This document shows positions 2,850-34,998 of a stretch of 48,017 nt of DNA, piece after piece. Source of the stretch: Octopus bimaculoides (Eukaryota); NCBI RefSeq assembly GCF_001194135.2, contig NC_068981.1, forward strand, positions 198,360,225-198,408,241, written 5' to 3'. Each line of letters opens with the position of its first letter. Position 1 is the first letter of the stretch. Under the pieces are notes generated by a model. That model was not told the DNA's origin. It worked only from the letters and a program-made list of their open reading frames with translations, and made no database searches. Both the position numbers and the translations under genes were made by a program.

Positions 2850-4263
2850 CAGCATACGATTGTAGTAAAGCATTTATTGAACTTTACCGATTCCAATCTT
2901 GCAAAGACAAAGACCAGCATTGATTACATTTTATTATAACAAACATGTCACAGGACATAAAAAACAATTTCCATTGTTGTACACTTCATACACAGAAAAA
3001 AAGAAATTATTTTCCAGACAACCTAAAATATGATAAATAACAGCAGATTTGAAACAAAGAATATAAAACATAATAAATAAAAATAAAATAAAAATTTCAA
3101 CAAATTATTGTATTTTTTCAAATTTTTGTTCAATATGTTATATTTCTTTATTTCTAATTTCATCTATCTCTACAATGGCAGTAAAAGTGATTTCATATAT
3201 TCTTTATACATTATTTGTAAATATTTCCACTTGTCAAGAATTATTCCAGTATATTAGAGAGTTCAAGAAATCTAAAAGATGAAGGACAAAAACAAAAATA
3301 ACTAAATCTACAAATAAAAAAAAAACCCAAAAAGAGTCATAAAATCCATGAAAATACAGTTAAAAAGAAAACAAAATCAAAAAAAATAACAACATGAGTA
3401 TCAATCTGTAGTTATTTCAAGAAATAATAATAATAATAATAATAATAATCCCCCCCACACACACTTTTTTTTTTTTTTGTAATGAAAATAAGATAAATTA
3501 AGAGTCAGAATGGCAGAGTTGTAAGTCTTTAGTGAGAAGTGTGACAGTCTGGAATCTCTTCAGAGGCAGGAAGAAANNNNNNNNNNATTATTATTCAAGT
3601 AATGGCAAGCTCTGCTTACCTTTCTGGTTCAGATGTTCTTTTATTTTTTTTTATTTTTTTTTTTATTTTTGTCCTTTTCAAAAACAAAACAATTCGGCCA
3701 AGTAATTTTAAACTTTTTTTTTTTTTTGTTATTTTATTTAAAATAACAATTTCCTTTGCCCATAGCTGTTATATTTGGTTAAAGAGTGACAGTTAGGACC
3801 AATCAAGGAGAATATTAATAAAGCGTACATCAATCTTCTTCAATTCCCAAACAATTCTCTTTTTCTTCTTTTCCTTTCTTGGAAAACAAAAAAGAGGAAA
3901 CCCTGGCACTTAATTCTTGACTTTGACTATTTTCGTTTCCAAGTGATGGTTCTTCTCTCTGCTCTGGCCTCACTGCTGACCAACATAACTCAAATACGCA
4001 CAACAAACATTACAATCGTTCATATTTATTATTTGAATGAGACTTCTAAACAACAGATCCCATTCTATTTGACAGTCTATGTTTTGTTTTTTTTCGTTTT
4101 TCCTTTTTTTCTTTTTCTTTCATATTGAAATCTATGCTGCAATGGAGCCAGAAGAAAAGATAATCTGGCTGAAAGAAATGTTCATTAAGCTAACAAAAAG
4201 AACAATGGAAGAAACAAAGGGGAAAAGGTCTGGAAGCCTGGAGGAGGAGGAGGAGGAGGAGGA
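2850..4263 (-). other. Probable ZER1 3' UTR (U/A-rich on coding strand); candidate AATAAA at 2873-2878
   Basis: Nearly repeat-free AT-rich tract downstream of the last exon. AATAAA on the minus strand is followed by a TG/T-rich stretch. Several other AATAAA hexamers exist, so the end is uncertain. Confidence 0.4.
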
Positions 4264-4497
4264 NNNNNNNNNNNNNNNNNNNNNNNNNNNNNNNNNNNNN
4301 NNNNNNNNNNNNNNNNNNNNNNNNNNNNNNNNNNNNNNNNNNNNNNNNNNNNNNNNNNNNNNNNNNNNNNNNNNNNNNNNNNNNNNNNNNNNNNNNNNNN
4401 NNNNNNNNNNNNNNNNNNNNNNNNNNNNNNNNNNNNNNNNNNNNNNNNNNNNNNNNNNNNNNNNNNNNNNNNNNNNNNNNNNNNNNNNNNNNNNNNN

Positions 4498-8670: not shown

Positions 8671-9360
8671 ATCATCATCATCCTCATCATCGTTTAACGT
8701 CCACTTTCCATGCTAGCATGGGTTGGACGACTTGACTGAGGACTGGTGAAACCGGATGGCAACACCAGGCTCCAGTCTGATTTGGCAGAGTTTCTACAGC
8801 TGGATGCCCTTCCTTACGCCAACCACTCAGAGAGTGTAGTGGGTGCTTTTACGTGTCACCCGCACGAAAACGGCCACGCTCGAAATGGTGTCTTTTATGT
8901 GCCACCCGCACAAGCCAGTCCAGGGGCACTGGCAACGATCTTACTTGGCTTGCCGGGTCTTCTCACGCACAGCACATTTCCAAAGGTCTCGGTCAGNNNN
9001 NNNNNNNNNNNNNNNNNNNNNNNNNNNNNNNNNNNNNNNNNNNNNNNNNNNNNNNNNNNNNNNNNNNNNNNNNNNNNNNNNNNNNNNNNNNNNNNNNNNN
9101 NNNNNNNNNNNNNNNNNNNNNNNNNNNNNNNTCTCACCACATGTCCATACCAGCGCAATCGTCTCTCTTGCACGCCACAACTGATGCTTCTAATGTTCAG
9201 TTTTTCTCTCAAGATACTTACACTCTGACGGGTATTCACATTGACATTACACATCCAACGGAGCATACTGGCTTCATTCCTTGCGAGCTTACGCATGTCC
9301 TCAGCAGTCACAGCCCATGTTTCACTGCCATGTAGCATGGCTGTTCGTACACAAAATGAG
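8671..9360 (-). mobile_element. Young RTE LINE 3' fragment (spans gap 8997-9131)
   Basis: ORF 8895-9407 gives CVRTAMLHGSETWAVTAEDMRKLARNEASMLRWMC...RRLRWYGHVVR; (atc)n tail at 8671. Confidence 0.9.
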
Positions 9361-10938: not shown

Positions 10939-11949
10939 CTGTTCAAAACACACACAAACACAAAAATGAAAATTTTAAAATGAAAATTAAAAAAAAAAAA
11001 ATTAGTGACATTTCTAGAGTATAATTAACACATAGAGTTTTTCCTACCCTCCTGGGCCAGAGTAACAGGTTAATAAAGTTATTTTAATAAATCCTTTCAA
11101 TTTTTTAACTACTTTCAAAATCAAGTGAAGCGTACACCTAATGAGTTAGTGTCACCTGAAGACTAAAAGCTTACATTAACACGTTGGCTCCCTCACGTCC
11201 TGCTGGTAGGTCATGATGGTATGTTAGTGAGTCCTGCCTGACCCACCAACAGGTCGTTTTTTTCAAATNNNNNNNNNNTGTTAGTGAGTCCTGCCTGACC
11301 CACCAACAGGTCGTTTTTTTCAAATTTCTTTCCCATGAGTTTTCTGAGAGCTGGAATGCTCCGATTACTTTGCTTTGTGATTTTGCTACACTAAGAGAAC
11401 AATTCTTTATAGATTTTCGATATTATTTTTTTTTTAACGATTTTCTTCTGATTTCACCCTGTAATGAGGTAAAATAAAAGAGTGAATTTTATTTGCCATT
11501 GAAGCAAAAATAGTTCTTTCTGGAAAAAATTGGTACATTTTCCAATAGAAACAGAAGGGAATGAAAAATATTTAACTTGCCATGGAAAGAAAAATAATTC
11601 TTTTTGAAAAGATTTCAAGATCTTCCAATAAAAAATACCCCAAATTTTTTAATTGATCACGGGTAGGTTGTGTGGTATCTAGGATGATTTGAACCTCACA
11701 ACCCTCTGGTGGGATGTGGGTATCCAGCACTACCTATGTGATCCTTGCCTCACATATGGTATAGTGTAAAAATATTACACCACTCATTAATCAAGACATC
11801 ATATTGGGACCCGGGGATAAAATGTAAAAAGTGGCTCAGGAGCCAATGTGTTAAAACCATTTTGATAACTCAATTGAGACTGGTTCTGCTTCTATGAGAC
11901 TGTTGTAAAGTGATCTCAATTGGAACTTTCTCAAAATGTTTTATCTTGA

Positions 11950-12874: not shown

Positions 12875-13227
12875 GGCGCAGGAGTGGCTGTGTGGTAAGT
12901 AGCTTGCTTACGAACCACATGGTTCTGGGTTCAGTCCCACTGTGTGGCACTTTGGGCAAGTGTCTTCTACTATAGCCTCGGGCCGACCAAAGCCTTGTGA
13001 GTGGATTTGGTAGACGGAAACTGAAAGAAGCCCATCGTATATATGTATATACATGTCTGTGTGTGTGTATATGTTTGTATGTCTGTGCTTGTTCCCCCAA
13101 CATCGCTTAACAACCGATAGAATAAGTACTAGGCTTCCAAAGAATAAGTCCTGGGGTCGATTTCTTCGACTAAAGGCGGTGCTCCAGCATGGCCACAGTC
13201 AAATGACTGAAACAAGTAAAAGAGTAA
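12875..13227 (+). mobile_element. SINE family A, near full length with internal deletion
   Basis: Head ggcgcaggagtggctgtgtggtaag...gggttcagtccc (A/B-box-like), internal TA/TG microsatellite, tail ...gactgaaacaagtaaaagag. Confidence 0.9.
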
Positions 13228-13559: not shown

Positions 13560-13974
13560 GTTACCATTTATTTCTAGGGAACCTTCTGGCTATTTGATGA
13601 AATCTATTTCCTGTGTGGCCCCAATGTTTATTGATCCTATCCCCCTGTCATCCATGAAGTCTACTTCTTCTTCTAGGCTGCCTGAAATTCCACGACACCT
13701 TTTCTGCTTACTAAACACGGTCATTTCCCAGATGGCAGCAAAGACCCTATACTCCCTCTCAATTCTAAGAGTTGCTCCCATATTTGGGAGTTTTTCTCTC
13801 TCGAATCACCACTGATTCCACTCTAAGAGCTGGGTCATCAGCAAATAGGGATCCCCATGGAGGGCTATAACAAACTGGACAGACCAGTGGATAGATCCTT
13901 GATGAATTCCTACTTGAATGCCAAATTCTTAGCTGAAATCATTGCCAACTTCTGCTTTTCTAACAGTCTCTTGG
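13560..13974 (-). mobile_element. Old RTE LINE RT-core fragment, interrupted at 13975 by the TIR element
   Basis: Minus-strand EFGIQVGIHQGSI..LQFVIAL and LFADD(P)ALRVES, i.e. degenerate GVHQGSVLSP and YADD motifs. Confidence 0.65.
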
Positions 13975-13978
13975 TATA

Positions 13979-14701
13979 GGGCTTTCCTATAAGTAGGTTA
14001 TCTCCCTTGGCTAGGCGGCGCTCCATGTAGATAATTAAACTTCCGGAGGCTAACCCACGCCATTGTTATTGTTTTACGTCTTATCATGGATATAAAGCAG
14101 CTTGATGATTCAGCTATCGAAGTACTTACTGTGCCTGAGTTAAAGAAATATTTAAGATTATATGGACAGTATGTTACTGGAAGAAAGGCGGACTTGATTG
14201 AAAGGTTGAAAGGTATAAAAATTCTGTCGATATGTCAACAAAGTAAATTCATCGGACGATAAGTCTGAAGTATCGGACGATACTTNNNNNNNNNNNNNNN
14301 NNNNNNNNNNNNNNNNNNNNNNNNNNNNNNNNNNNNNNNNNNNNNNNNNNNNNNNNNNNNNNNNNNNNNNNNNNNNNNNNNNNNNNNNNNNNNNNACGGA
14401 TGAAAGCAAAGCAACAGTTAAGGAGTGGCATATTTTACCACGACAGACACGTACACAGCATCGAATACCACGATGTGAGTGAAAGCTGCTCTCACTGTAT
14501 TGTCCGGTGTCTGGTAATCCCTTCGATACCGACATCAAACCAAAAAAAGAATCCTGACCACAGAGTGTGGGTAATTATGTCAAATGTCACTGGCAATGTG
14601 TATTCAGCTGATTGCAACTGTTAAAGCAAGTCACTGAGCATGCGTACATGTCATACGGGAGAGTTCCAATCAGGGGTGGATAACACCTTATAGGAAAGCC
14701 C
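13979..14701 (+). mobile_element. Non-autonomous TIR DNA transposon (15-bp TIR GGGCTTTCCTATAAG, TATA duplication) carrying a SAP/SWIM-like ORF remnant
   Basis: Perfect inverted termini at 13979-13993 and 14687-14701, with TATA at 13975-78 and 14702-05; internal ORF remnants; gap 14286-14395. Confidence 0.85.
14086..14624 (+). pseudogene. Disrupted SAP-domain plus SWIM-like Zn-finger ORF inside the TIR element
   Basis: 14086-14262: MDIKQLDDSAIEVLTVPELKKYLRLYGQYVTGRKADLIERLKG (SAP consensus L.V.ELK..L...G...G.KADLI.RL), then a frameshift. 14400-14624 ends VWVIMSNVTGNVYSADCNC*. Confidence 0.75.
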
Positions 14702-14985
14702 TATATAACTTGTCTGGTCCTCCCCATCCATTCATTATGTCCTAGTCTTCTCAGTGACTACCAAATCAGGAGCTGGGAACTCTTTCAAAGCTTTACAAAT
14801 GTCAGCTATAGTGATTTATTCCTGACTAAGTATTTCTCCTGTAGTTGCTAAGAAAACAGAATCAGTTGGACTACACCCAGGCGCAGAGTCAAACTCCATT
14901 TAATCCTGATTGATTTTCATCCAAATCTTTTCACTTACAACCCATTCTGCATTCTGATCCAACAGTTTGTTATCCCAGTAATTAT

Positions 14986-15027
<42 letters not shown>

Positions 15028-15895
15028 ATGGATCTCCATTGCCTTTGAAGAGGATGCTGCTAATTCTAAATACATTAGAACTGGTTTGGTTTTAGACCAG
15101 CATCGATGACGCTTCACTGCACCCATTCTAGACAGCATCCAAAAGCAAGACCATCTGACTGATTGATATCAAGTCAGCCAGTTGCCACACATCTCTGGGG
15201 CGCATAGATAGGCTGTCTCTGCTGTATCCCCTACTGGTCTTGTACCTGTAGGGGACACAGGAACCTCTGACTCATTCATTTCTCTTCTCCCTAATTGTGC
15301 TCTTTCCTCATCTACTGGGCCCTGCACCAACCAATAAACTCAGGCGCTTGCTCTCACTATCAACTCTCTGGGATTACTATGTTGTGCACGTTTTCCTGAC
15401 AACCGTCAACATAACCATGAAGGCTGGTGAGGGTTAGAGCTACCCCCGCCCCACCCCGCTGTTCTGCACCAAACTAATCCAATCAAAGATGCAAGATATG
15501 CATGTGCAGCAGATGTTTGGCTTCATTGAGGGTTCACAGCTCCAGGACAACAGACGTGATTAGAGAGTCTCTGAAAAGGACCGCAAGATGAGCCGACTGG
15601 ACGGAGGCCTAGGGGTAGACCAATAACGAAAGGGTCGAATAATATCCATAGCCTCAGTTGATCACACTTTGGAAATCCAGAAAAAACTTAATGATATTTG
15701 CTTCTGATGGGACCCTATGAAGGAGGTGCCTAAGGACTCTACCCCAATGACCCTTCCAGTAACGGTCAGCAGAGAAGACAGATGACTGGAAACAATAAGA
15801 GATTTGACAAAGTACACAAGCCCATGCTGTTGGCAAGATTTCAACATAAAAGTCTTCAGACAAGTTTCTCAAGTAATCATGTAGGAGTTCTTTAA

Positions 15896-23119: not shown

Positions 23120-23400
23120 CACCATAATTCTGGTGGAGCAACTGCAAGGGAAATTCTTAGCCAAGAGTACAGCATTCTTGGTATTTGTTGATATGAAGAA
23201 AGTCATTGACAAAGTCTCTAAGCTCTGTAACTTGGTAAGTGTTAAGAAACTGGATCTAGATGAATGGCTTGGAAGGACTGGTCAAACCATAAGCAACAGT
23301 GCAGATAATAAACAGGTAAAGATTGGCATTGAGTTTGCTGAAGAATTGTTTTATGTAGAGACCCAGTCGTACACAAAAGCTCTATTCTCAGTTTCCTTCT
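23120..23400 (+). mobile_element. Degenerate RTE RT-core fragment
   Basis: EQLQGKFLAK...FVDMKKVIDKV...KKLDLDEWL resembles RQLQEKY....FVDLEKAFDRV...RKLG.DEW. Confidence 0.7.
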
Positions 23401-33377: not shown

Positions 33378-33795
33378 GGCGCAGGAGTGGCTGTGTGGTA
33401 AGTAGCTTGCTTCCCAACCACATGGTTCCGGGTTCATTCCCACTGCATGGCACCTTGGGCAAATATCTACTATAGCCTCAGGCTGACCAAAGCCTTGTGA
33501 GTGGATTTGGTAGATGGAAACTGAAAGAAGCCCATCGTATATATATATATACATGTGTGTGTGTGTGCGTGTGTGTGTGTATGACTGTGTGTCTGCCACC
33601 CCATCCACCCCAACAATGCTTGACCACCAATGCTGGTGTGTTTACGTCCCTGTAAGTTAGTGGTTCGGCAAAAGAGACCAATAGAATAAGTACTAGGCTT
33701 CCAAAGAATAAGTCCTGGGGTCGATTTGCTCGACTAAAGGCGGTGCTCCAGCATGGCCACAGTCAAATGACTGAAACAAGTAAAAGAGTAAAAGA
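33378..33795 (+). mobile_element. SINE family A, full length
   Basis: Complete head, internal (TA)n(TG)n, 3' part and gagtaaaaga tail. Confidence 0.92.
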
Positions 33796-34598: not shown

Positions 34599-34770
34599 GG
34601 CGCAGGAGTGGCTGTGTGGTAAGTAGCGTGTTTACCAACCACATGGTTCTGGGTTCAGTCCCACTGCGTGGCATCTTGGGCAAGTGTCTTCTACTATAGC
34701 CTCGGGCCGACCAAAGCCTTGTGAGTGGATTTGGTAGGCGGAAACTGAAAAGAAGCCCATCATATATATG

Positions 34771-34803
<33 letters not shown>

Positions 34804-34998
34804 TTGTCCCCCAACATCGCTTGACAACCGATGGTTGTGTGTTTACGTCCCCGTAACTTAGCGGTTCAGCAAAAGAGACTGATAGAATAAGTACTAGGCT
34901 TCCAAAGAATAAGTCCTGGGGTCGATTTGCTCGACTAAAGATGGTGCTCCAGCATGGCCACAGTCAAAAGACTGAAACAAGTAAAAGAGTAAAAGAGA
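34599..34998 (+). mobile_element. SINE family A, full length
   Basis: As 33378-33795, with high similarity. Confidence 0.92.

Follow-up and report, generated by a model that had tools for sequence, protein, structure and literature searches.

The interval at positions 13975-14705 of a 48,017-nucleotide stretch of Octopus bimaculoides DNA (contig NC_068981.1; the whole stretch is referred to here as the window) raises a question of classification: which superfamily of DNA transposons does this small element belong to, and what is the gene remnant inside it? The original prediction described a non-autonomous transposon with terminal inverted repeats (TIRs), a Kolobok-like or unclassified origin, and a SAP-SWIM accessory gene. 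Kolobok elements encode their own DDE transposase with a THAP domain and target TTAA, and accessory ORFs occur among them. ISL2EU elements pair one ORF that combines DDE, HTH and THAP domains with a second ORF for a YqaJ exonuclease; they duplicate a 2-bp AT target, their TIRs usually start with GG, and autonomous copies average ~4.8 kb (PMC4482050, PMC4122938, PMC9179366). The evidence below makes it very probable that the feature is a ~720-base non-autonomous, MITE-like internal-deletion derivative of ISL2EU (PIF/Harbinger or PHIS superfamily).

Termini and subterminal regions

The ends of the element are well defined. An inverted-repeat search identifies a 19-nt repeat, TATAGGGCTTTCCTATAAG, with arms at 13975-13993 and 14687-14705 that are 100% complementary. 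Each arm is composed of the 15-nt GGGCTTTCCTATAAG and a palindromic TATA, which bears out the predicted perfect 15-bp TIRs with TATA on both sides. The left TIR occupies 13979-13993 on the plus strand and is homologous to the termini of the Logan contig L001, Sinanodonta, Mya and others (alignment A1); the right TIR, its reverse complement, lies at 14687-14701 on the minus strand. Both start with GG, as short ISL2EU TIRs usually do. The exact 15-mer has two sites in the whole 48 kb window, and both are element termini. A scan of metagenomes with the 15-nt TIR returned 120 loci, none of them similar beyond the 15-mer, and these are accordingly regarded as chance matches.

Subterminal sequence is conserved as well. 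The left subterminal region and ORF2 5' leader (13994-14085, plus strand), supported by A1 and by blastn to L001, includes a conserved GTTATCTCCC (13997-14006), a conserved TAGGCGGCGCT (14012-14022) and an invariant ACTTCCGG box (14039-14046), all on the plus strand. The right, transposase-side subterminal region (14625-14686, minus strand) carries GTTATCCACCCC, GGAACTCTCC and a GCATGC box (alignment A2). The likeness of GTTATCTCCC to GTTATCCACCCC, first noted by eye, is real and is kept across species in both alignments.

The observed/expected CpG ratio is 0.83 inside the element, 0.26 and 0.31 in its flanks, and 0.33 in the window. This CpG retention points to a young insertion, as had been suggested. 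No DDE or THAP remnant is found by tblastn anywhere in the 48 kb window, in agreement with the earlier remark that no DDE transposase is visible. The prediction of a young, non-autonomous TIR transposon whose autonomous partner lies elsewhere stands.

The internal gene remnant

The interior of the element holds two pieces of a coding exon, here called ORF2 exon 1, separated by an assembly gap. The first piece (14086-14285, plus strand) begins with an ATG and runs through a SAP motif at ~14122-14211 to a frameshift at 14230-14233. Its ORF (14086-14262, 58 aa) matches the Pfam SAP profile PF02037 with 33.7 bits over residues 13-42, against a cutoff of 23.9, and the SAP motif recognised by eye is confirmed. 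Amino-acid identity of this piece to O. bimaculoides family members is 93-97%. The frameshift also proves genuine: it is a 5-nt deletion that leaves 4 nt (atat) at 14230-14233, where family members have 9 nt (MKN) and relatives read ILS-MKN-VNKVNSS across the site.

The second piece (14396-14624, plus strand; …LRMKAKQQ…SADCNC*) comprises a conserved pre-SWIM region and the CxC half of a SWIM finger, and its ORF (14400-14624) terminates with ...SADCNC*. The terminal CxC cysteine pair is invariant among 14 homologues in the alignment, of which 12 are full length, and a C-x-H that follows 7-8 residues later is nearly invariant in the same set. Because the cysteines are invariant and C-x-H comes next, the end of the window ORF is read as the first half of a CxCx(7-8)CxH SWIM-type finger, much as the original prediction had it. 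A full SWIM (CxCxnCxH) has four ligands; the window copy ends after CxC.

The missing part of the gene is visible in a more diverged match, P0007, which is encoded on L001 (1,990 bp). This contig opens with a homologous terminus, AGCACTTTCCGATAAGGTAGTTATCCCCC. Past CNC its ORF continues as …CNCTAG, is interrupted by a GT…AG intron, and resumes with GQGEACNHIGALL… in a long second exon that supplies GEACNH, the CxH of the SWIM finger, and then a YqaJ domain. Against Pfam, the spliced protein scores 71.7 bits for YqaJ, 62.1 for Viral_alk_exo and 24.1 for SAP. The Pfam SWIM profile PF04434 has no match to the L001 protein at E ≤ 0.1; the SWIM call is based on conservation of CxC…CxH and on the 'SWIM-type' names in UniProt. 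In the window, homology with the first exon of the full-length gene stops at an internal deletion breakpoint (14620-14621), ~10 nt before the L001 splice donor, and the stop codon at 14622-14624 (plus strand) is made by the deletion junction.

A search with the L001 protein recovers SAP–SWIM–YqaJ homologues of 565-614 aa across molluscs: Sinanodonta, Pecten, Pinctada, Mercenaria, Mya, Haliotis, Gigantopelta, Patella, Solemya, Littorina and Lottia. Several matches carry the UniProt name 'SWIM-type domain-containing protein', and a YqaJ fragment from O. bimaculoides itself (P0028) is among them. When 15 sequences are aligned, the nuclease motif …SPDG…EIKC… proves to be conserved. At a cutoff of E ≤ 1e-3 this very large family has 11,666 cluster representatives; the stricter E ≤ 1e-10 leaves 4,937. 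Judged by this homology, the internal sequence of the window element is exon 1 of a conserved SAP–SWIM–YqaJ exonuclease gene, the ORF2 of ISL2EU, and it is this exon that splices to YqaJ in L001. The predicted SAP-SWIM accessory protein is thereby recast: the SAP and half-SWIM remnant is there, and in place of an accessory gene it represents the standard YqaJ ORF2 of ISL2EU in truncated form.

The assembly gap and a host-gene alternative

The gap (14286-14395, 110 N) hides ~100 nt of ORF2 exon 1 (…SDRNKQKLISPLGEVLPDL…), judging by relatives. In blastn comparisons, window positions 13982-14232 match L001 5-257 at 75% identity and 14396-14620 match L001 440-664 at 85%; both sides of the gap are thus collinear, and on the same strand, with a single relative. 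The 53 nt to the left of the gap plus the gap itself correspond to 182 nt of L001, and the octopus short family, according to its proteins, is without ~30 nt of L001 in this region. Since the family proteins imply ~100 nt missing, the 110 N size is plausible, and the comparison with L001 gives no sign of a misjoin at 14286-14395. Taken at its nominal length, the gap puts its two sides in different frames, but the 5-nt deletion breaks the ORF whatever that length is, and several family members (P0016-P0018) stop inside the segment that the gap hides, at …ISQIMT*.

A gap inside the feature invites the reading that this is a fragment or retro-copy of a host SAP gene, caught within a chance inverted repeat or produced by a gap assembly artefact, and in UniProt the relatives do appear as gene models for a 'SAP domain-containing protein'. 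That reading is extremely improbable. A perfect 19-nt inverted repeat is expected by chance at an estimated ~1e-5 in 1.7 kb, transposon copies in other molluscs preserve the termini and the subterminal motifs, many near-identical copies exist, and both gap sides are collinear with L001. The element is better read as a transposon whose own coding capacity is dead, given the 5-nt frameshift, the truncated zinc finger, and the loss of nuclease and transposase. The SAP/half-SWIM ORF in the window is a relic.

Two-gene relatives in bivalves and gastropods

Full-length relatives reveal the second gene. Mya arenaria has six loci (L002-L007) with ~6.48 kb copies that are 99.95% identical, and at all six the SAP–YqaJ gene is convergent with a gene for a 462-521-aa protein that matches HTH_Tnp_4 and DDE_Tnp_4; a THAP match accompanies it at 4/6. 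Both genes are called at every one of these loci, the transposase model being full length (521 aa) at three, and L003 holds a head-to-tail pair of copies with one AT between them. The Mya family is probably still active today. In Sinanodonta woodiana a 4,562-bp element shows the same convergent two-gene layout, and its exons score 149 bits for DDE_Tnp_4, 53 for HTH_Tnp_4 and 34.8 for THAP in Pfam; the Mya exons score much alike. In Haliotis cracherodii, frameshifted THAP and DDE remnants adjoin a copy of the SAP–SWIM–YqaJ gene.

The termini that enclose the two genes in Mya and Sinanodonta are homologous to the ends of the window element. Alignment A1, which covers the left ends of the window copy, L001, Sinanodonta, Mya and three Logan/ENA contigs, has CTTTCCnATAA, GTTATCnCCC and the invariant ACTTCCGG in common. 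Alignment A2, which sets the reverse complement of the window right end against the transposase-side ends of Sinanodonta, Haliotis and Mya, shares GTTATCC, GGAACTCTyC and the GCATGC box. Because the gene and both ends are homologous, the window element resolves into 640 bp from the left of an ISL2EU element and 81 bp from its right.

The ACTTCCGG box, which is ETS/GABP-like, sits 60-90 bp inside the left end of every aligned ISL2EU relative. It also occurs inside the transposase-side end of full-length copies; L008, L004 and L009 have it at both ends. A GCGCATGCGC-like box is present at the right ends of Sinanodonta and Mya and is degenerate in the window at ~14636-14645. The ACTTCCGG and GCGCATGCGC-like boxes resemble compact promoters that would serve the two convergent genes. 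The short octopus elements would carry the left putative promoter box around the genome.

The combination of DDE_Tnp_4, HTH and THAP that marks an ISL2EU transposase is present in the relatives and absent from the window copy, as a non-autonomous element would lead one to expect. The entire transposase gene is missing from this copy, and so are the YqaJ domain and the remainder of the SWIM finger. The tie to a DDE transposase runs through the bivalve and gastropod relatives and the octopus YqaJ fragment P0028. The window copy does have homologous ends, no transposase, a short length and multiple copies, the marks of a MITE-like deletion derivative. A TA-type element of the Tc1/mariner kind was considered and is ruled out, the relatives carrying a Harbinger-type transposase.

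The host flank

The element lies in a CpG-poor host flank (14706-15130, minus strand, running on into 13700-13974) that resembles degenerate reverse transcriptase (RT) sequence. The original prediction called this an older RTE fragment, an assignment that the searches did not confirm. RT-like motifs are seen by eye on the minus strand, and a paralogous stretch matches weakly; Pfam searches with single-frame or stitched translations under three junction models gave no RT or RTE match, and phmmer gave no RT match in PDB. The paralogous stretch is a second degenerate RT-like sequence at 23124-23345 (plus strand), with 33% identity over 75 aa (E ~1e-6) to the flank of the element.

Other features of the window include a perfect (CT)19 microsatellite inside the RT-like flank (14989-15026), a dispersed repeat of ~230-290 bp with copies at 72-76% identity (13001-13227, 33501-33791, 34725-34992), and four more assembly gaps (3577-3586, 4264-4497, 8997-9131, 11269-11278). 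A tRNA scan found no tRNA-like gene in the window.

Target-site duplication

Three models of the target-site duplication are compatible with the letters at the junctions: (a) a 4-bp TATA duplication around an element that reads GGG…CCC; (b) a 2-bp AT duplication around AGGG…CCCT in a T|AT|A target; and (c) a 2-bp TA duplication abutting GGG. Because TATA is palindromic, the window locus by itself cannot separate them: AT stands on both sides if A…T are the outermost bases of the element, and a 4-bp TATA is equally compatible. The predicted empty site is GGTATATAAC under models (a) and (b), and GGTATATATAAC under model (c).

Relatives are more informative. TATA flanks both ends of the Sinanodonta copy and the left ends of L010 and L011 (different insertions of one other family) and of L014. 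The ends of the Mya copies read wATT|GTCC…GGAC|AATw, and their flanking 4-mers are unequal (e.g., AATT vs AATA). A 4-bp duplication is therefore excluded in Mya, where only AT plus one terminal base fits the copies. The published empty site of ISL2EU-2_Pxyl is A|AT|T with AT duplicated, and all published ISL2EU families are given with an AT duplication (PMC4482050).

The RT-like flank provides a further, weak test of the junction. Its best frame, …LRRLGHNEWMGRTRQVI|YQETVRKAEVGNDFS…, remains open through the junction only if the empty site is GGTATATAAC, and only with that site does the alignment to 23124-23345 run 17 residues past the junction (33.5 bits vs 32.0 and 31.6, a weak difference). 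Another RT reading, 'GGPDKLY|QETV', which would imply a TATA empty site, was dropped in favour of the better frame …LRRLGHNEWMGRTRQVI|YQETV….

By analogy with the relatives, model (b), which duplicates AT within a T|AT|A target, is favoured. The left flanking TATA (13975-13978) would then consist of a flanking T, the duplicated AT (13976-13977) and an A (13978) that is the outermost base of the element, comparable to the Mya ends (wAT|T-GTCC…GGAC-A|ATw) and to ISL2EU-2_Pxyl; the alternative for the same four bases is a 4-bp TATA duplication. In the right flanking TATA (14702-14705), T would be the last base of the element, AT (14703-14704) the duplication and A the flank. The atypical TATA duplication of the original prediction is thus not established: the same letters fit a 2-bp AT, and of the two readings it is AT that suits the Mya copies and accords with published ISL2EU elements.

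Two alternatives turn on these observations. The first keeps ISL2EU as the superfamily and proposes a subgroup with a true 4-bp TATA duplication, or a 2-bp TA next to GGG, in place of AT. TATA precedes the first G at 7/7 examined ends in four TATA-type families, and the length and composition of duplications vary within the PHIS superfamily (PMC4482050), yet this proposal is distinctly unlikely when the Mya relatives fit only AT with one terminal base and AT is listed for all published ISL2EU families. Model (c) in particular is unlikely: TA abutting GGG would call for an empty site with an 8-nt TA run, which breaks the weak RT frame.

The second alternative is that of a Kolobok-like or undescribed superfamily that duplicates a 4-bp TATA and has a SAP–SWIM gene as an accessory. 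It could draw on the TATA at both ends in the window and in Sinanodonta and at the left ends of L010, L011 and L014, on the one-TATA join of the flanks, which is the only in-frame extension of the weak RT alignment (and equals the join under the AT model), and on the THAP domain, which Kolobok transposases have too. It is nonetheless very improbable, being opposed by a second ORF that is the hallmark YqaJ protein of ISL2EU and by the unequal Mya 4-mers, which exclude a 4-bp duplication in a homologous family. Kolobok as such is ruled out by the transposase type of the relatives, THAP with HTH_Tnp_4 and DDE_Tnp_4 as in ISL2EU, and by the missing TTAA target, the flanks being TATA. An ISL2EU derivative with an AT duplication remains the preferred reading.

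A short family in the octopus genome

The window copy is one of many. A protein search with the two window ORF pieces returned 18 matches, of which 17 are O. bimaculoides gene models, 93-278 aa long and labelled 'SAP domain-containing protein' or 'uncharacterized', with identity up to 97%. Across two protein searches, at least 25 O. bimaculoides gene models (~94-182 aa) derive from the short unit seen in the window. The window unit is a repeat family with multiple copies in the octopus proteome. Exact-protein look-ups of the 74-aa window ORF and of P0012 in the contig index gave no further octopus copies with flanks.

Two O. bimaculoides models, P0014 and P0015, join element exons (SAP, pre-SWIM) to unrelated sequence, which in P0015 includes a Kazal-domain region. 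These models are either cases of transposon exonisation or annotation artefacts.

For annotation, the consequence is that dozens of O. bimaculoides 'SAP domain-containing protein' models are pieces of a transposon and not host genes. The octopus family can be filed under ISL2EU (PIF/Harbinger) instead of 'unknown DNA'. No report of ISL2EU in octopus or other cephalopods was found in the searchable literature, and the octopus family is apparently a new ISL2EU member, undescribed for cephalopods in that literature.

Proposed origin and mobilisation

The parent of the window copy would be a full-length ISL2EU with short TIRs, ORF2 reading in from the left end, and a convergent THAP–HTH–DDE gene reading in from the right. 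Its ORF2 would encode a SAP–SWIM–YqaJ, lambda-exonuclease-like protein. An internal deletion of such an element, for example through abortive gap repair, may have produced the short unit. The window copy keeps the left TIR, the subterminal/promoter region and almost all of ORF2 exon 1, followed directly by the last 81 bp of the right end. It could move only if mobilised in trans by the THAP–HTH–DDE transposase of a full-length ISL2EU elsewhere, which would recognise the conserved TIR and subterminal motifs and excise the element. Integration at T|AT|A with a 2-bp staggered cut would duplicate AT.

A broader proposal is that the mollusc elements form a distinct ISL2EU subgroup, defined by a SAP–SWIM–YqaJ ORF2, ACTTCCGG/GCGCATGCGC-like promoter boxes and a target that is strictly TATA, perhaps duplicated as a genuine 4-bp unit; as a whole it is an unlikely one. 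If it held, the short octopus elements would spread a working promoter and a SAP-peptide ORF, and that ORF could be exonised (cf. P0014, P0015) or interfere with the full-length ORF2 protein. For the role of ORF2, the near-identical and apparently active Mya copies would be a better system than the dead copy in the window.

Comparison with known systems

The closest known system is ISL2EU as described from Crassostrea gigas (ISL2EU-2_CGig/ISL2EU-10_CGi) and as ISL2EU-1_ADi (Han et al. 2015, PMC4482050). As in ISL2EU, the relatives of the window element encode a THAP+HTH+DDE_Tnp_4 transposase in one ORF and a YqaJ protein of ~500-650 aa in a second; the TIRs are short and start with GG, the target is AT-rich with AT by the ends, full-length relatives measure 4.5-6.5 kb, and non-autonomous copies occur. 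Unlike ISL2EU, the window copy has neither gene in working form. AT abuts GG in the published ISL2EU logo, whereas in the window element one more base separates AT from GGG, and its outermost target bases are T…A (TATA) where the published ones are A…T (AATT). The extra terminal base and the outer T/A are a minor variation. The SAP and SWIM modules of ORF2 go unmentioned in the cited ISL2EU descriptions; comparison across species presents ISL2EU ORF2 as a three-module SAP–SWIM–YqaJ protein, accompanied by strongly conserved terminal and promoter-like motifs.

The window element also resembles MITEs such as mPing, the short partner of Ping in PIF/Harbinger. Like them it is short and multicopy, shares its TIRs and subterminal sequence with an autonomous element, and lacks a transposase, and it would likewise be mobilised in trans. 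Classical MITEs mostly have an anonymous interior, whereas the family in the window keeps a recognisable coding exon and promoter region.
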